Positions 9,191-50,294 are shown, counted from the whole stretch's first letter. The stretch: 63,270 bases of DNA, filler included, from Octopus bimaculoides (GCF_001194135.2; 7 parts of 6 records of this genome joined end to end with filler, not necessarily neighbours in it), one strand, 5' to 3'. Made by a program: numbers and translations. Notes: generated by a model from the letters alone, not told the origin.

Positions 9191-10325
9191 ACTTTTTGAG
9201 AGGAAAAATTGTCTTCGTTATATTAGCTTTGGGATGAATACATCAATTGATCTGACTAGAACAGAAAACCAGTAGGTAATAGAAAGTACAAGTATCCATA
9301 CGCACAAAGAATGCATTCGTACATATATACATACACATACGTACACGTGTATATATATATATATATATNNNNNNNNNNNNNNNNNNNNNNNNNNNNNNNN
9401 NNNNNNNNNNNNNNNNNNNNNNNNNNNNNNNNNNNNNNNNNNNNNNNNNNNNNNNNNNNNNNNNNNNNNNNNNNNNNNNNNNNNNNNNNNNNNNNNNNNN
9501 NNNNNNNNNNNNNNNNNNNNNNNNNNNNNNNNNNNNNNNNNNNNNNNNNNNNNNNNNNNNNNNNNNNNNNNNNNNNNNNNNNNNNNNNNNNNNNNNNNNN
9601 NNNNNNNNNNNNNNNNNNNNNNNNNNNNNNNNNNNNNNNNNNNNNNNNNNNNNNNNNNNNNNNNNNNNNNNNNNNNNNNNNNNNNNNNNNNNNNNNNNNN
9701 NNNNNNNNNNNNNNNNNNNNNNNNNNNNNNNNNNNNNNNNNNNNNNNNNNNNNNNNNNNNNNNNNNNNNNNNNNNNNNNNNNNNNNNNNNNNNNNNNNNN
9801 NNNNNNNNNNNNNNNNNNNNNNNNNNNNNNNNNNNNNNNNNNNNNNNNNNNNNNNNNNNNNNNNNNNNNNNNNNNNNNNNNNNNNNNNNNNNNNNNNNNN
9901 NNNNNNNNNNNNNNNNNNNNNNNNNNNNNNNNNNNNNNNNNNNNNNNNNNNNNNNNNNNNNNNNNNNNNNNNNNNNNNNNNNNNNNNNNNNNNNNNNNNN
10001 NNNNNNNNNNNNNNNNNNNNNNNNNNNNNNNNNNNNNNNNNNNNNNNNNNNNNNNNNNNNNNNNNNNNNNNNNNNNNNNNNNNNNNNNNNNNNNNNNNNN
10101 NNNNNNNNNNNNNNNNNNNNNNNNNNNNNNNNNNNNNNNNNNNNNNNNNNNNNNNNNNNNNNNNNNNNNNNNNNNNNNNNNNNNNNNNNNNNNNNNNNNN
10201 NNNNNNNNNNNNNNNNNNNNNNNNNNNNNNNNNNNNNNNNNNNNNNNNNNNNNNNNNNNNNNNNNNNNNNNNNNNNNNNNNNNNNNNNNNNNNNNNNNNN
10301 NNNNNNNNNNNNNNNNNNNNNNNNN

Positions 10326-11191: not shown

Positions 11192-11959
11192 GTAAGGAGC
11201 ACTATACATAGAGTGACATACGAAGGAGCCATCGACTAGTAAGTTCTTCGTAACATTTTGATTCTATCTTTAAGCAGGCATCAAAACATTTGTTATTTAA
11301 GCAGTTCAATAAGGTATTATCCAACATATTCTCGTTAGATATATCACTTACTTGGACCTAAATATTAAATCTGTATGTAGTGTCGCGCTTCTTTTCACTG
11401 GTGAACCTAATTTACCTCAAGTCTAACACATAGATTATAAATATTATAGCATAGCACTATAAGTTGAAACTGGAAACTTCTTAAGACACGTGCTCTTAAA
11501 AAATATCCCTTACGTTACAAGTACAATTTGTCTTACATTAAACTAGCAGCACACTTGGGAAAGTCAGGAACTCCACGGTATTTCTGTCCCCATATTGTTC
11601 GGATATCTACTACATAAAGAACACAGCCTGTATCCATAATTCATGGTTATATGTAGTAATGTGCTTTATTCCTGTTACACATTAAATATTTTATAAACAA
11701 GTGAGTATTGCAAATTGTATTATCATACATTTGCATAACGAGTGTAGGTAATGCAAATATAGAAACTCAGTAACAGGAGTGTGTTCAAAATAAAAGTTAG
11801 CGTATATTAATATAGATGAATCTGGGTTCTCGCAAAAATCGAACATATTATATACAAAATGTATCTGTGAGTGTGTATATATGTCATTATGTGTGTCTTC
11901 TTTCGTATGCATGTGTGTGTATGTGTGTGTGTGTGTGCGACATTCATAAAGTGAAAAAT

Positions 11960-40442: not shown

Positions 40443-40597
40443 ATATATAGTAACAGTCACACTTTCTTTTTCAATAACTTTCTTCTGTTTTGCATCTTCA
40501 GACACAAGCTTAAGAATCGAAAGATCTAGATTCTTAAGTTTCTGAGTTCAAATGAAAGCATCGTAGCTTTACTCTTCAAGAATACATTTCTGTGTAG

Positions 40598-41957: not shown

Positions 41958-42217
41958 GGTAATCTTCAAGTTTAGGGGGATAAAAAAAACAAATAAAAAT
42001 ATTCAAGGGAAATAACTGAACGACTTACCAGTATTATCCGTTTTCTTCTAGCTGTTTATAAATAAATCACACCCTAACCCTAATCCTAACGTCAATCAAA
42101 TCACGTGTGTGATTTATTTATAAACAGAGATGTACGGAGAATACTGGTAAGACGTTCAGTTACTTCCCTTGAATATTTTTATTTATTTTTTTTATCCCCC
42201 TAAACTTGAAGATTACC
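41958..42217. mobile_element. Palindromic MITE with ~110-bp TIRs and a central telomere-like spacer
   Basis: GGTAATCTTCAAGTTTAGGGGGATAAAAA.. is inverted as ..TTTATCCCCCTAAACTTGAAGATTACC. The centre contains CCCTAACCCTAATCCTAAC at 42072-42090. Confidence 0.85.
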
Positions 42218-44014
42218 GTGGTGGTATTAGTCAGATATCTTTATACAAGCCTGGCATTTATTTATTCACCATAGATGACTCCAAAACAAAAAAGTGTATC
42301 CGACTGGAGACACTTTTGTTAAGAAAACGACTTTAGATGAGAAAGCCAGAAATGGTACATCATTGTATCGCTTACCTGATTTCCTTTCAGATAACTTGTC
42401 CCTATGTGAGAAAATCATTGTTAGCAGTGAAAAGCGAACTCGCTAACGACCTAGAGATAACTTTCCAATGAACTCAACCCCTAACTAGTTTCGATAGCTG
42501 GAGATACTGTGATATTTCATTTCATTTCATTTACACTACTAATGCCATTCGTTTTTTAAAAAATGAACATCAAATCTTATAATTTCTTCATACCCAATAA
42601 ATTTCAAGTATTGTGTTTATGCCAGAAATCATTTAGAGTGATGTGGGTGATAGCGCAGAAGTTGGTGAGCTAGTGAGTTTCGACTTTGAAGTTGATAAAA
42701 TAAACACCAGTATCATATCGGAGTAGATTCAATCGATAATGCCTCCCCCTTTACAAAAAGAGGTTTTCTGTCTAGTCAGAAGAAACCATTATGTTAACAA
42801 TTATTATATGATTATTAAGTCGCACTTGATTGGTCTTTGTTAACCTGAATCTGATAACCTGATGTCTCTCTTGTATTATTACTTTTATCGTTTTCATTTG
42901 GCTATTTATTGATTTATCGTCCGGAACAAACTGATACTAAACGGCTTTTCATGGGTGGGGTTGATTTGACAGATCAATACCAAGACTGTTGTAAGTATTA
43001 ATTTTTAATATCTTTGTTCAGATGATTTTTTTAATGTAAACATTTGAATTAATTAAAATGCGATTTCAATTAATTGTAATCTCCTTAAGTAGAAATACAG
43101 GCAAGAAGGAAGGCAGGAAGGATGGAGAAAAAGAAGCCGATTCACTGAAGAATCAATCCTATGCTGAATTTATACAAATATTTGAGAAAAATAATTGTTA
43201 ATGATAGTCTCTATATTTAAGTTAAACTATAAATGTCAAACAATCTCCCTTTCTTCCCCTTGTGAAAAGCAATCAGTTTCAACAGAAATCATTATTATAG
43301 TATCTAGTTTGCTTTTGGTTTTTGGGGTTTTTTTGTGTGCTATTTTGTTCAAATGTTCAAATTATGCTGAGCTTATTTTGCCTTTCATACCCCTTAGATC
43401 AATGAAGTAAGTATCAGTATTATATGAGATCAATTAAATGAATTGCATCTTTCTCTACAAATTTGTGACAGATTCGCTAGAATCCAAAGAAACTAAAATC
43501 GTTTGCGTCAACAAGGATCTATATTTTTGATAGCATTAAATATTTCATCTCGTCAAGGCCACATAGCCTACCTCATTGTTTTACTTTCACAGTATTCTAG
43601 ATTTGTAAGCATGTAATCCAGCACCTCTTTGTGCCAGATTCTTTCAGGCCCATGGAAATAAAAGCTTAAATCTCACTTTGGATGAAAAAAAAACTGAAAC
43701 TCAGAAACAAGAGTGCAACAATTTTTTTTCCCCCATTAGAGGAAGCTTTTTCCACCTCTCTAGTGGAAGTGTTCATTGTTTTTCAATTTTGTTTAAGCCA
43801 AACAAATAGATAATTCACACACAACCCCCCACACACGCACACTCACAGAGGGGAATAACAGTTCTTAACGTCTGCCAAACGCAGAACGCACTTATTTCAA
43901 CAACACAATAGCAAGAAACCAGATTTTAAATACCTGCAACGATTTCGACAACACCAATTCAATAACACTAGCCACAATTTGAACAGTAACAATCAATCAA
44001 ATATTTAACTCTAT

Positions 44015-45540
44015 GTATTTCTTTATTACCCATATTAAGGCTATACAGAAAAGGTTAGTTCGACAAGTACAACACATAGAGACAATACAAAACGAGACAT
44101 AACATAAACTCGAGGAACTAAAAATTAATAAAAGATGACACAAGTAGAAAAAATAAAAGAAACGAATGATAGTATGAAAAGAATGAAAATGAGGTGTAAT
44201 ATCCACTAGATCCCCAAAGTCGAGTGGTTACACTATTACATTATTTTATCAGTCTTTTCTCCTATTCAAAGTTCACATTACTTACTTTTTTTTTCCAAAA
44301 AGTCCACAATATTGTATATTTTGCAATTTTTCTCATTCATCAGTTATGTCTTCATATTCCACCACAGACAGCGAGGCGTCACATAACCAAATTGATTTTA
44401 CTTCTTTTATCGCTTCTCCAGCTTCTCCAAATGTATCTGTAACTTCCGTGTACCGGTCTTCATGTATCGTAATCCCTATGTCATCCGTTTCATATTCTTC
44501 TCTAGGCAGTTTCGCCCTCACCACTCTTTTCCAATAGTTTTTTTTTTTCCATTTCTATACTCTTTTTATAAACAACTAGTATTCCCTTATACTTGCTTTC
44601 TTCTTCATCTGATGTTACTTCCACCGCTTGCACACTTTTAGATTTAAATTCATTTTCACCTTTCTGTCTCCTTAGTTTCCATAGACATTTTTCTTGCTTT
44701 TACCTTCTTCCTTTTGGAGCTGATAAACTCATCACTCTCCTCTTTCACTTCGTTCCTTTCCTTTATGATGCTGACTCGCTCACCATCATTTATCTTTTCT
44801 TTCTCTTGTTCTTCCTCTTTCTCATATAGCGTAAATTCTGCCAAGGGGCACTGAGCCGTCATATGGCCCCGTTCCCCACAAATATAGCAATTGGGCCATC
44901 TTCCTTCCACTACTACACCTAGCCTTCCTCCTTCAATCTCAATCTGGTAGGGGATTCGCGCAATGTCTTTGAATGTATCAAAAAGCCACATTTCGATGCC
45001 TAATCCCCATCAGTTTCTCTTGTTTGTCACACCTATTTGACCCAGTTCAGGGCAGTCTTCGGTTGTCGAGAAAACGGCTGCAACCAACCACTCGGCCTTG
45101 ATTTCTGGTGGCACTCTTGGGATTCTCACCCTCACACTTCTTCTTCCCTTGTAAGAGGGCAACAATATAACTTTGTTCTTCTTCAGGATGTTGGTGATAT
45201 GCGAGGCCGCCTCTTCCTTGGTGACAAACCTTACCTCCACCGTACCGAACTTGCTACCTCTGCCAATAAACTCTGCTTCTTCTACTACGTCGGCCAAACA
45301 CTCCTCAATTTCCTCTTCCTCCAGTTCGTCAATTTTATCGGCGGCGACCGCCAGCGTGCGGTACACCACCGTCTTGTCCTCCTTCTCTTTCACTGTCTTT
45401 TGCGGAGGCACTAACTTAATGGTGTCTCCTTCCTTTTTCATCAGTTTCTCACTCTTCCTCACCTCCGCCATATTAACCGTTATTGCTGACACTTCCATTT
45501 GCGGTGTCGCCTTTGCCGCAAAGGCCTTGGCGTAGCTCGC
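44015..45540 (-). mobile_element. ORF1-only Tx1/L1-like retroelement, copy A (5'-truncated; pseudogenised ORF 44333-45540)
   Basis: SYAKA..VPPQK..VVYRTL..RGSKFGTVEVRF..LLPSYKGRRSVRVRIPRVPPEI..WGLGI..VVVEGRWPNCYICGERGHMTAQCP, a charged linker and a C-terminal domain. About 310 nt of 3' UTR follows, ending GGGTAATAAAGAAATA. No ORF2. Confidence 0.8.
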
Positions 45541-47325
45541 CTTAACACACTTTCTTTATTCGGCACTTAGGCCTTAACACAGAGGGGGACACTACAAGGA
45601 CAGACAAAGCAATACAGTACGTGGGATACAAAGAATGAATGATGAATGACTTACAATGAGGTGATGAAATGGCTTACGAGTCCCCCAAAACTCGCAGTTT
45701 CATTTAACAGTTCTCTCATACAGTTAATAATCATGTTTTTTCTTTAGCAATTGTAAGTGGCCACAGCTCTTCTACCGTTACTACACTTGGCAGGGTGTCG
45801 TAGCCCACGTATGATGCACTTATTTGAAACTTGTCCGGGTGTATCTGTTGCAGTCTCTGCATCACATGTTCTTCCACCAATATCGCTTTCTTTTTTTCCT
45901 CAAACGTTTCAGGGTCCAGTTTAACCCTTACTAAACCATTTACTTTTGCAATTGTCTTTTCCAATATTAAATCCTTATCGTAAATAATCACTGTTTTGAT
46001 ATTTTTAAAATCAACTCTTCCAATTACCTTTCCTTCCATCCTTGCTCTTGTCTNNNNNNNNNNTTTCCTTCTCTGTCTTTTTTTTCTTTTCTTTTTTTGA
46101 GGGTTCTTTGGCGGCGATTCAGTCCGCATACGCTTTCTATCTGTTTCTTGAGAAATTTTCTCGCACTCCACAGTTTCCGCCTGTTTTTTCTCCACCACCT
46201 CTTGTACGCCTTCCACCATCTCCTCTTCACAGACCTCTATTTCTTCCACTTGCACTTCTCTGGGGGACACACCACCTGCATGTGTCCCCTACTTTTACAC
46301 TTATAACAGATTGGAGGTCTCCCCTCCACCACAACTCTTAGTCGTGCCCCGTCGGGGAGCTCCACCTCCTCTGCTATATTGTGCAGATCTGGTAAGGTTA
46401 TGTGTACGAGTGCATCTATACCAAATCCCCACCAGTTGATCTCTCTCGATTTTTGTATTTTCAAAACTTCCACTTCGTCCTTGCAATTATGAATAACGGC
46501 TGTAACCAGCCATTCCGGATCTATTTCGGGAGGTGCCCGTCCAATACTCACACGTGCAGCTCTTCTTCCACAATAGGTAGGTAAAAAGGCCCACCTAGCT
46601 GTTCTTAAGGGTACAGTGGGGTGCTTTTTCGCCTCTTCCTCACTCGCAAATCTCACTTCCACCGTACCGAACTTCCTTCCATGTGCATAGAATGTTGTTA
46701 ATTGTTTGACTTCGCTTAGGCACCGCTCCAATTCGCCCCTCTCTGCCACTTCTATTTTCTTTGTTTCAACGTTAAGCGTTCTGTATGTTATAATTTTCCT
46801 CTCGGCTCGCTCGAAAACTTCCTTCGGCGGTGTTAATTTTAAAACATCACCTTGCTTCGTGAATAATTTCTTGTATTTCTCCAATTTTGTTTTATCCACG
46901 TGTATCTCTTGCATTGCATTGGTAGACAAGTTTCTACTTGTTGCCGCAGCATACGTTGCTTCTTCCATACCCGATATGGGCAGGAAAACAATTTTCAACA
47001 ATAGATATCAACGATAATATTTAAACAACAATTCTTAAAACAATTTCAACAGAACGCAAATCAGAGAACTCACCGCGTTAAACGCTTTCTTCAACCAAAA
47101 TCAGAAAAACACGGCCAACATCAACGGGCTACTTTAAGACCACGAAAAACAGCAGCAAACCACGCGCGCGATAACAGAGTTCAACAATAACTTTAACAAA
47201 TTTCACGTACTTCACAACAATTCTCAACTCACAAGGCAGTAAAAACGATCAAACAAATATTTAACATCATGACTTACGTCTAACACGACAGAAACCACTC
47301 CGTTACTAACAACTCAAACCGCCTG
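45541..47325 (-). mobile_element. ORF1-only Tx1/L1-like retroelement, copy B (apparently full length; ORF ~46968-45731, frameshifted, 10-nt gap)
   Basis: T/G-rich 5' UTR; MEEATYAAA..TPPKE..ITYRTL..HGRKFGTVEVRF..FLPTYCGRRAARVSIGRAPPEI..NWWGFGI..VVVEGRPPICYKCKSRGHMQVVCP; C-terminal VIGRVDFKNIK..YVGYDTLPSVVTVEEL*. About 180 nt of 3' UTR ends AATAAAGAAAG. No ORF2. Confidence 0.85.
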
Positions 47326-48168
47326 TTCATATGGCAATCTTCTCTACTTCATCTTACTCTCTAAACACGCATGTGGGATCAGAAAATGTTATGCTGGTAC
47401 AGTCCACTTTTCATGTGAGAATCAAAATTAAAAATAATCATTCATTCTATTTTATTGTGCGGTCACTGTCCATAAGTGCAATACCACCGACTGACAGCTC
47501 AAATCCCGTCACTGCTTCTGACGCTGCGCCTATAGTTGAAACATCAAAAGACCAAATTCATAGTTGCTATACTTTATAAAGGCTGATATCCATAAACATC
47601 GAATTTTTTGAAAGTGTCACATTGTTCAATAGTGTCCGATACCGAGATTAAACCCCATTTTACACACTTTGTTGATTAGAAAGATATCGAAGTTCTTATC
47701 TCTGAAGCTAAATCTAAAATACTACGTAAACAGATTAGATTAAATTGTGGGTGGATATTAATTTAATTTAATTAATTTAATTCTTTCTCATCAAACTAAC
47801 TTTTGCACGATCAGAAGCCCATTTTATTTTTTTATCCGAACTGTCCTCCTTCCCTCCCCTCCCACTGTTTCACTCTTTTCTTTCATTTATATCTGTTTAG
47901 TTTTAACGTACGATTTGTTATGTTTTGCTTTCATTTAAAATATTTACACCTCATTGTTTGTATACTATTCACTTGATCAATTATATAAGATTTCATTATA
48001 CTATAATTTTGTGAAGTAGTATATTTGACAATCAAATATATTTTATGGATGTTTCGCAGAGTAGTGGATCTATAAGCCTGATTTAATCTAAGGACTCTGT
48101 AAGAAAACGAAATCTTCAAGTGTTAACGCTAATACCCATAAATTGAGACGTATTATAATTTTCTTAAG

Positions 48169-48303
48169 TTTTCGTATCAAACTTTCGTTTAAATGCAATA
48201 GCAGCTTGCACATGGGGGTTTGCAAACGAGAATTTATTTTGTATTGGATTCCTCGCAGGAATTTTGATTTTATGGTGTCAGTCATTGAGTGTCTATGCAC
48301 GAG
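48169..48303 (+). CDS. Candidate exon with a possible RhoGAP-like segment
   Basis: GTATGT donor at 48304. One frame gives FLAGILILWCQSL (cf. RhoGAP xAGxLKLYFRxL) and another gives VCKRE..IP, so the frame is unresolved. Confidence 0.25.
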
Positions 48304-48654
48304 GTATGTTATTGCTTATTCAGTCTCCGACCATTTGTCACAGTCTGCATACACCGTGATGCAAATCACGCGTGTAAGAACAGCATATAGATGCTAAACC
48401 GCTTCTATCCCCAACACGAAAGGAACGAGCCCAAATATACTGACATCAAAAAGATGGGAACTTCAGCTACATCTCAATATCATTTTTATACATTACTAGG
48501 ATCATAGAATGGCTGAAATCTGTTTTGTTTTTTGCTAAAGGCACCAAGAAATAGGTAACACTCATTCCACTTCTGTATACCTCTTCTGCATAATTTTTAT
48601 TTTGTTTTATGATATACATTTTTCGGTGCGGCGTCCGACTGCAGATAAAGTAAT

Positions 48655-48840
48655 ATTGGTTTCAAATTTTGGCACAAGGCCAGACGTTTCGTGGAGGGGG
48701 TTAGTCGATTACATTGACTGGTACTTATTTTATCGACCCCGAAAGGATGAAAAGCAAAGTCGACCTCGGCAGAATTTGAACTCGAAACGAAGCGCTGCTA
48801 AGCATTGTGTCCGGCGTGCTAACGATTCTGCCAGCTTGTC
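48655..48840 (-). mobile_element. SINE family A copy
   Basis: Clear match to the family A core. Confidence 0.85.
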
Positions 48841-48899
48841 ATCCTCAGATAAAGTAATATTATAATCATTAGATTAGCACGCCGGTCGAACTGCTTCGC

Positions 48900-49678
48900 A
48901 GTATAACGGCTCTGTGAATTATTGTGAATACTGTTGTGTTACTTTGTGAAAACTGTCTCGGTGAATAATTATGATTTTTGTGGAATTATTACGGTTGCAT
49001 TTNNNNNNNNNNNNNNNNNNNNNNNNNNNNNNNNNNNNNNNNNNNNNNNNNNNNNNNNNNNNNNNNNNNNNNNNNNNNNNNNNNNNNNNNNNNNNNNNNN
49101 NNNNNNNNNNNNNNNNNNNNNNNNNNNNNNNNNNNNNNNNNNNNNNNNNNNNNNNNNNNNNNNNNNNNNNNNNNNNNNNNNNNNNNNNNNNNNNNNNNNN
49201 NNNNNNNNNNNNNNNNNNNNNNNNNNNNNNNNNNNNNNNNNNNNNNNNNNNNNNNNNNNNNNNNNNNNNNNNNAAGGCCACTGCGGTGAGGAAGCCAGTG
49301 CCGCTGGAAACCAAGTTAATCAAGTTGGATATGGAGGAGGTGACCAGAAGCAGGAATTTGATAGAAGTTGAGGGAGACTCATACAAATTGTGTCCCCCAA
49401 AAGAGACTAAAGAAAATAAGATTCTGAGGACAGTAGTGTATCGTACACAGGCTGTCGAAACCGATAAAATTGAAATGGTGACGGAAGAAGAAATCGAGGA
49501 GTGCCTGGGTGAAATTGTCAATGAAGCCACGTACATCAACAGAGGAAGAAAGTTCGGTACGGTTCGCCAATATAGAAGAGGCAACCAAGCATGCAACCAA
49601 CATATTAAGAAGTGAGAAAATAGCATTGCTACCAAGATTTAGAGGAAGAAGTGTGAAAATACGAATTCCCAGAGTTAC
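48900..49678 (+). mobile_element. ORF1-only-family element, copy D (5' UTR-like sequence, gap, N-terminal ORF part), broken at 49678
   Basis: CPPKE..VVYRTQAVETDKIE..EEIEECLGEIV..RGRKFGTV/VRFANIEEATKH..LLPRFRGRSVKIRIPRV, homologous to copies A and B. Confidence 0.8.
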
Positions 49679-49680
49679 AC

Positions 49681-50294
49681 CATTTCTCTTTATTATAGGC
49701 ACGAAGGCCTCATTTACAGAGAAGGGGGACATTACAAGGACAGACAACACAAAACGTGGGGTACATAGATCGAATTATGAGATGAAATGAGTAAATTACA
49801 ATATGATGATGGAATGGCTTACGAGTCCTCCAAAGCTCGCAGTTTCATTTCACAGTTTTCTTATACAGTTCTTATTCTTGCATTATTATGTATGGTTTCA
49901 GCTCCTCCACCGTTACGACGCTTGGCAAAGTGTTGTAGCCCACATATAACCCACTTAGTTGGAAATTAACGCAGCTTCTTCGCTATCCTCCACCACTATT
50001 GCTTTTGTTTCATCATCAAACGTTCCGGGTTCTAATTTCAGTCGCACCAATCCTTTTATCTTAGCTATCGTTTTTTCCTTTTCTACACCCTTACTGTAGA
50101 AAAGTATTGTTCTAATATTTTTAAAATCTACCTTTCCGATTATCCTTCTTTCTGCCTTCGCCTTTTCCTTCTGTTCCCTCAACACAGTCCACCAGTTCAG
50201 CCACCTCTCCTGTCTTGTCAACAGTTTTTCCTGCTTTGTATCTTGGGTTTCAATCTTAGTTACGTTCTGTTCCTCGCTATCATTTCCATCTTCC
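49681..50294 (-). mobile_element. ORF1-only-family element, copy C (3' part; 5' part lost in the gap)
   Basis: RIIGKVDFKNIRTILFYSKGVEKEKTIAKIKGLVRLKLEPGTFD and YVGYNTLPSVVTVEELKPY. Its 3' UTR is homologous to that of copy B and ends AATAAAGAGAAAT. Confidence 0.85.

Follow-up and report, generated by a model that had tools for sequence, protein, structure and literature searches.

We analyzed a window of 63,270 nt from the genome of Octopus bimaculoides (GCF_001194135.2; seven parts of six records joined end to end with filler, not necessarily neighbors in the genome), and searched the piece of it that spans positions 30107-50294. At 43,988-50,294 this piece contains four homologous but diverged copies of one open reading frame (ORF), designated here A, B and C (minus strand) and D (plus strand). 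An earlier note on the same DNA had proposed that they are retroelements carrying only ORF1 of a long interspersed nuclear element (LINE), with no ORF2 to supply endonuclease and reverse transcriptase (RT). The four diverged elements and their orientations were confirmed by tblastn and by alignments, in which all the protein motifs listed in the note could be seen. With the frame-repaired protein of B as query, homology within the piece was confined to its right-hand end, where A aligned at 45540-44836 (minus, 42% identity, E = 1e-50), C at 50173-49875 (minus, E = 1e-23) and D at 49319-49682 (plus, E = 6e-12 and 8e-5). At the DNA level, B (45553-46036) is 69% identical to C (49687-50152) and A is 71% identical to D, and these alignments divide the copies into two subfamilies, A/D and B/C. 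C is also 91% identical to the O. bimaculoides protein P0001 over 57 aa. Damage is found in all four copies, although B is only lightly affected.

The most complete copy, element B (45551-47243, minus), comprises a 5' untranslated region (UTR; 47243-46969), an ORF that runs from the ATG at 46968 to the TGA at 45733-45731, and a 3' UTR with tail (45730-45551) that closes as AATAAAGAAA at 45560-45551. Its 5' limit is provisional, being defined by a direct repeat at 47265-47244. The ORF is open over ~408 codons except for its sole frameshift, a 1-nt shift in a run of five C (46262-46266, minus), where frame 2 ends with CPPEKCKWKK and a stop while frame 1 runs on as PREVQVEE. Homologues read CPRREIIVEE at this site, and since a sixth C would mend the frame to give CPPREVQVEE, the shift could be an assembly error. 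Inside the K/R-rich basic linker of B there is an assembly gap of ten N (46054-46063, no strand), whose left flank stops at the end of a codon; the right flank follows in frame only for a true gap length of 1 mod 3, which ten satisfies. Because P0001, P0003 and C have 44-55 residues at this place, ~130 nt of B may be missing, and the continuity and frame of B are therefore putative.

Element A (44018-45540, minus) lies head to tail behind B, separated from it by ~10 nt of filler (GTGTGTTAAG; 45541-45550, minus): the DNA homology between B and C stops at AATAAAGA, and the coding homology of A begins at 45540. A has no 5' UTR, a decayed ORF, a 305-nt 3' UTR and the tail AATAAAGAAA (44027-44018). 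It also misses the first ~3 codons and starts at about codon 4, so that its SYA is not the start for which it had been taken in the earlier note. An in-frame TGA (45012-45010) replaces the first W of NWWG, and the C-terminal part carries at least three frameshifts, at about 44660, 44540 and 44524. Of element C (49683-50294, minus), cut by the edge of the piece, only the 3' half is present, with one frameshift near 49958; it comprises the linker, the C-terminal domain, the stop at 49874-49872, the 3' UTR and the tail AATAAAGAGAAA (49694-49683). This tail abuts the middle of element D (49274-49682, plus), an N-terminal ORF fragment of the A subfamily that is inverted with respect to C, has one frameshift near 49562, and ends at RIPRV(T)P against the 3' end of C (junction at 49682/49683). 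The gap at 49003-49273 covers the start codon of D (about 9 codons, judging from P0004) and its 5' UTR, and the sequence on its far side is unrelated to D.

A word-indexed search for homologues returned only three O. bimaculoides proteins and, when later run with a profile of 121 sequences, known matches only. An exhaustive profile search yielded 967 proteins at E <= 1e-3, 365 of them at E <= 1e-10. Named members come only from O. bimaculoides, O. sinensis, O. vulgaris and Argonauta hians, with the remainder in unlabelled assemblies, and the family has so far been seen only in octopods. The long matches are chimeras, gene models that also include WD40, LDLR or RGS domains, and no RT was found in them. 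The identity of the ORF emerges from four loci, L001 (O. sinensis), L002 (Argonauta hians), L004 (O. vulgaris) and L006 (a 6-kb marine metagenome contig), where homologues with 27-37% identity (E = 1e-15 to 8e-48) stand directly upstream of an ORF2 that encodes endonuclease, RT and zf-RVT domains. Because these homologues immediately precede ORF2s of the apurinic/apyrimidinic endonuclease (APE)-RT-zf-RVT type, the window ORF is, as judged by homology, the ORF1 of a LINE. In L004, three head-to-tail units of ~5.28 kb each, 98-100% identical, have an ORF1 that shares 36% identity with B along 214 residues (E = 4e-36) and that overlaps an ORF2 of 1132 aa (Exo_endo_phos, RVT_1 and zf-RVT); ORF1 is followed by ORF2 in the same way in L001, L002 and L006. 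The L004 ORF2 matches human L1 ORF2p at E = 2e-71 and R2 proteins at about 1e-24. Published octopus repeat annotations describe L1-Tx1 as an ancient coleoid LINE group, and list it as recently active in O. vulgaris (13 families, 421 insertions; PMC13282606). From the best PDB match to L1 ORF2p together with this annotation, the full-length relatives appear to be L1-Tx1-type LINEs.

Some further features of these relatives can be recorded here. The first of the three LINE copies in L004 (4430-20260; O. vulgaris OX597840.1) may be active, because both its ORF1 and its ORF2 are intact; the units abut directly, the tail AAATAAAATAAAA being followed by the 5' end (C)ACYGATAGGACGTTACTTTGAC. The L006 contig (Tara Oceans, ERZ907901) contains the end of an ORF2 (zf-RVT), an ORF1 of 861 aa and the start of an APE-RT ORF2, arranged head to tail. 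In O. sinensis, L008 (8001-8846; LOC115225585) is a distant single-exon relative, 25% identical to B and with a degenerate knuckle; it lies inside the span of another gene, is annotated with three isoforms, and an ORF2 is absent within 8 kb. Domestication or expression of this copy is possible. Two of the profile matches, P0006 (1434 aa) and P0015 (2741 aa), are odd proteins with 26 and 40 tandem CCHC knuckles, spaced regularly every 56 or 64 residues; only the knuckle accounts for their match, and they are unrelated to the ORF1-only family.

The encoded protein has an N-terminal motif, (S/T)YA..AA, followed by two domains resembling RNA recognition motifs (RRMs), a CCHC knuckle, a charged (acidic/basic) linker and a C-terminal domain. 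An AlphaFold2 (AF2) model built from an alignment of 121 sequences reached a mean predicted local distance difference test (pLDDT) score of 81.4, with residues 21-240 and 320-400 ordered; a model from 8 sequences only (pLDDT 38.7) was unusable. The predicted secondary structure consists of two beta-alpha-beta-beta-alpha-beta units, the knuckle, a disordered linker and a third such unit. The top Foldseek matches of the model in the PDB are all multi-RRM structures (Prp24, SFPQ/NONO, IMP3 RRM1-2 and hnRNP A1 UP1), each with a probability of about 1. In Pfam the members match zf-CCHC and nothing else, there being no match to Transposase_22 in any of the 121, and against PDB sequences the profile matched only retroviral zinc knuckles. 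Type I ORF1 proteins (ORF1p) are defined by at least one RRM together with a CCHC knuckle, in the scheme of Khazina and Weichenrieder as it is summarized in Ivancevic 2016 (PMC5203782), and both components are present here, as tandem RRMs in the Foldseek matches and as zf-CCHC in Pfam. The predicted fold is thus a tandem RRM plus CCHC knuckle, i.e., the Type I ORF1p architecture, in agreement with the RRM and CCHC composition that the earlier note had recognized. The silence of Pfam on the RRMs fits the non-canonical RRMs of this class in the literature. The C-terminal domain aligns with the C-termini of LINE ORF1s around a (Y/F)..(I/L)K..F..DVG motif (hhalign P = 8e-4) and is probably homologous to them; we regard the window ORF as a complete ORF1.

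No homology to LINE ORF2 was detected in the piece, even at E <= 10. In B, 170 nt separate the stop (45733-45731) from AATAAA (45560-45555); the interval is 177 nt in C (49874-49872 to 49694-49689) and 305 nt in A (44335-44333 to 44027-44022). These intervals of 170-305 nt leave no space for an ORF2, as the earlier note had reckoned. The same succession of stop, short 3' UTR and conserved tail is found in A, B, C and three loci outside the window: L003 (O. sinensis), which is of the A type, 5'-truncated and carries two insertions of short interspersed nuclear elements (SINEs), and L005 and L007 (O. vulgaris), which represent a third type. No ORF2 lies downstream of L003, L005 or L007. Copies without ORF2 therefore occur in at least three species, and not one of these six runs on into an ORF2, which, as the normal state of copies genome-wide, would according to the note have refuted its proposal. 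As a side observation, L003 is interrupted between duplicated GYDVSA codons by a SINE that by eye resembles a SINE-like repeat of the window.

The timing of the loss can be approached through B and C, which have an identical junction between stop and 3' UTR, (t)aactgtat.aga.aactgt. Because this junction is shared although synonymous sites between the two are saturated, ORF2 had already been lost in their common ancestor, and its absence is not a one-off deletion. Their 3' UTRs (45551-45730 and 49683-49871) are 86% identical and their ORFs 64%, which points to strong cis constraint on the whole 3' UTR or to recombination between subfamilies. The ratio of nonsynonymous to synonymous substitution (omega), a comparison for which the earlier note had called, is 0.18 for B versus C and 0.24 for A versus D, and the proportion of synonymous differences (pS) exceeds that of nonsynonymous differences (pN) by more than 6 standard errors. 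These values indicate that the ORF has been under purifying selection within the ORF1-only lineage. In a neighbor-joining tree, the subclades A/P0004, B/P0001 and L005/P0021/P0009 have bootstrap values of 96-100%. A single ORF1-only clade, first suggested by this tree, has a bootstrap value of only 7%, and the sequences lend no support to a single origin of the ORF1-only state.

The copies share a conserved 3' tail of ~45 nt with the structure GTCCCCTCT...GGCC.TTGTG.C.AATAAAGA(G)AAA, which ends as AATAAAGAAA in A and B. In B it reads GTCCCCCTCTGTGTTAAGGCCTAAGTGCCGAATAAAGAAA (45551-45595, minus), with equivalents at 49730-49683 in C and at about 44075-44018 in A. The same tail closes the ORF1-only copies A, B, C, L003 and L005 and the full-length LINEs L004, L002 and L001. 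The tail of C matches that of L005 at E = 6e-8, and in comparisons of B and A with the 3' UTR of the L004 LINE the score lies at a z of about 4-5 relative to shuffled sequences, none of 200 shuffles reaching it. Moderately good evidence thus suggests that ORF1-only copies and their autonomous partner have a 3' end in common, which is what recognition of the ORF1-only RNA by the ORF2p of a LINE would predict. No poly(A) run follows AATAAAGA(G)AAA in A, B or C, where unrelated sequence begins at once. A hairpin of 3-4 bp lies just 5' of AATAAA, formed by GGC...GCC in the ORF1-only copies and by GCC...GGC or CCC...GGG in the LINEs. RNAalifold predicts for the tails a weak 4-bp hairpin only (-1.2 kcal/mol), and the difference between the two groups is a hint only.

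Truncation at the 5' end, nesting and head-to-tail joining are frequent among the copies. The 5' truncation that the earlier note had suggested looking for is seen in A and L003, and within the window the tail of B is followed, beyond the filler, by A, and that of C by the middle of the inverted D. Since such head-to-tail junctions are seen not only between B and A but also three times in L004 and again in L006, tandem joining seems to be characteristic of this LINE group. B and A together are bracketed by a 22-nt direct repeat, whose 5' copy (GTTAAATATTTGTTTGATCGTT; 47244-47265, minus) matches the 3' copy (43988-44009, minus), 8 nt past the tail of A, at 20 of 22 positions; one of 300 dinucleotide shuffles reaches this score. 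The repeat is a candidate target-site duplication of one composite B+A insertion, but it may instead be the start of a 5' UTR or the 5' end of a third, fragmentary copy. The 5' UTR of B resembles those of L004, L005 and L007 at chance level. Around L007, an 80-nt segment occurs three times (9381-9461, 9709-9789 and 11708-11779), once inverted and upstream, and overlaps the apparent 3' end of the element; it probably belongs to another repeat.

We therefore suggest that the four copies, dead or nearly so, most probably belong to an octopod family of non-autonomous, ORF1-only derivatives of L1-Tx1-type LINEs, with elements of ~1.5-1.75 kb composed of a 5' UTR of ~280 nt, one ORF of ~400-450 codons and a 3' UTR of 170-500 nt. 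The likeness to mammalian HAL1 (half-L1) proposed in the earlier note draws support from the homology to LINE ORF1, the independent copies without ORF2, the common tail and the values of omega. Under this interpretation, an element would be transcribed and its own ORF1p would coat its own RNA; the resulting ribonucleoprotein would capture the ORF2p of an autonomous L1-Tx1 LINE, which would recognize the common 3' tail, and the RNA would be copied into the genome through target-primed reverse transcription. We infer, in short, that ORF1-only elements are mobilized in trans by the ORF2p of a partner. The order B-then-A could have arisen in a single event, by a template jump in which the RT, having reached the 5' end of an A-type RNA, continued at the 3' end of a B-type RNA, or by later insertion of B at the 5' border of A; under either origin, C would have inserted into D. 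It is also conceivable, but rather doubtful, that the ORF1-only elements form a long-lived independent lineage, rather than recurrent by-products of decaying LINEs, with a cis-preferring ORF1p, a hairpin-bearing tail that co-evolves with the RT of L1-Tx1, and composites generated by template jumps. If true, this would represent in a mollusc a division of labor between Gag-only and RT-bearing elements like that of HeT-A and TART.

Several observations weigh against the derivation from L1-Tx1 LINEs and mobilization in trans. The likeness of the tail to that of autonomous LINEs spans only ~45 nt and its statistics are modest, and there is no poly(A) tail to account for the priming of reverse transcription. 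A profile of the C-terminal domain gave no significant hmmsearch match to LINE ORF1s. The deep phylogeny is weak, and independent origins of the ORF1-only state are possible. The survey for ORF2 in ORF1-only copies was confined to the piece and to L003, L005 and L007, and these three loci outside the window, having been found via gene models, are a biased sample. As for target-site duplications, the 22-nt repeat around B+A is the single candidate, and no exact repeat of at least 8 nt flanks L003. A 19-nt duplication proposed for L005 was withdrawn, its 5' copy aligning by eye with the 5' UTR of L007; this repeat probably belongs to the element itself, and a local-alignment test between the 5' regions of L005 and L007 was not significant.

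One alternative is a host gene family of RNA-binding proteins descended from ORF1, in a domestication resembling that of ZCCHC3, and spread by local tandem duplication. In its favor are the four copies within 6.3 kb, with B and A head to tail, and an omega below 1; several octopod gene models do encode such proteins, and LOC115225585, the distant relative in O. sinensis, is annotated with three isoforms. The neighbors, however, come from deeply diverged subfamilies (B versus A, 42%) and differ in truncation points and orientations, which argues that they are not duplicates of one unit. In place of an intact, single-copy, syntenic gene we find four damaged copies of two subfamilies, truncated and nested, with in-frame stops and frameshifts, and beyond the window hundreds of diverged members, some fused into WD40, LDLR or RGS gene models. 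The 3' tail is moreover common to LINEs, and 5'-truncated copies exist. We consider a host gene family quite improbable.

Processed pseudogenes, i.e., retrocopies of an ORF1-descended host mRNA made by the LINE machinery with no self-perpetuating family behind them, would account for intronless copies that extend from a 5' UTR to a 3' end with AATAAA and are in some cases 5'-truncated. This is very improbable, given that no copy has a poly(A) tail, that the ends lie 4-6 nt past AATAAA, too near for a cleavage and polyadenylation site, that the tail is the LINE's own 3' terminus, and that there are several old subfamilies, each with its own copies. The least credible of the alternatives is that full-length L1-Tx1 insertions each lost ORF2 by a separate local deletion after insertion. 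The same genomes do harbor ORF2-bearing full-length relatives, and all four window copies are decayed. Separate deletions would nonetheless have had to produce an identical junction and homologous 3' UTRs in B and C despite saturated synonymous sites, and to lead likewise from stop to short UTR to tail in A, L003, L005 and L007, and an omega of about 0.2 indicates that selection continued to maintain the ORF once ORF2 had gone.

HAL1 resembles the octopus family in being a non-autonomous derivative of the L1 superfamily that kept ORF1 and lost ORF2. Kojima (2018; PMC5753468), with reference to Smit 1999 and Bao & Jurka 2010, reports that HAL1 arose several times, and the octopus ORF1-only elements likewise fall into several deep lineages. 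The ORF1p of HAL1, however, is Type II (coiled coil, RRM and C-terminal domain, matching Transposase_22) and of mammalian L1 descent, and the element ends in poly(A), whereas the octopus family has a Type I ORF1p with two RRM-like domains and a CCHC knuckle, an extra C-terminal domain, a AATAAAGAAA end with no poly(A), and octopod hosts. The octopus family thus works like HAL1 but is not HAL1 proper, given its RRM-RRM-CCHC architecture, its octopod host and the absence of Transposase_22. With L1-Tx1 LINEs that encode a Type I ORF1p it has RRM and CCHC in common; the full-length octopod relatives have an L1-like APE-RT-zf-RVT ORF2, which the window elements lack.

At Drosophila telomeres, HeT-A is a Gag/ORF1-only non-long terminal repeat retrotransposon that uses the RT of related elements and forms head-to-tail arrays. 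Head-to-tail junctions are found in the octopus group too (B to A, L004, L006), but HeT-A is a telomere-specific member of the Jockey clade (for the context of its arrays, see PMC13534243), whereas the only telomere-like feature on the octopus side is the presence of short TTAGGG-like runs near some loci. Short (TTAGGG)2-3 runs occur in L002 (15527), L003 (163) and L007 (12199); the fetched loci lie internal to Mb-scale chromosomes. ZCCHC3, a gag-like RNA-binding protein that likewise has a CCHC knuckle (PMC10351740), is by its description a conserved single-copy host gene, unlike the multiple, decayed, transposon-shaped copies of the window.

A diversified and selected family built on a Type I ORF1p would mean that the same parasitic strategy exists in a second and very different branch of the L1 superfamily. 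To our knowledge, ORF1-only LINE derivatives are well documented only in mammalian L1 (HAL1) and, by analogy, in Drosophila HeT-A. The family would offer a natural system for the contribution of ORF1p when ORF2p comes from another element, and for what the RT recognizes in a tail without poly(A). Copies of this kind are now absorbed into "L1-Tx1" repeat counts or annotated as octopus CCHC-domain "genes", and some are fused into unrelated gene models. Of two papers on octopus and cephalopod repeats that name L1-Tx1, neither uses the term "ORF1", and in PMC13282606 "non-autonomous" is likewise absent.

Scans of the region detected neither tRNA genes nor tandem repeats. In the piece, a SINE-like repeat of ~190 nt is present in three copies (48645-48831, 32994-33209 and 40268-40446; 70-78% identical), in which ARAGORN detected no tRNA. 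There are two palindromic repeats, one of 260 nt (41958-42217; arms 84% identical) with a telomere-like run, CCCTAACCCTAATCCTAAC, at its center (42073-42095), and one of about 280 nt (31950-32226; arms 76% identical). Finally, an ORF of 109 aa at 35953-36282 (plus), reading ...HQDKAPAHKS...PGYCPDLGPSGYHLFPN..., has no match in Pfam; it looks like what is left of a mariner/Tc1 transposase, namely the C-terminal DDE region.

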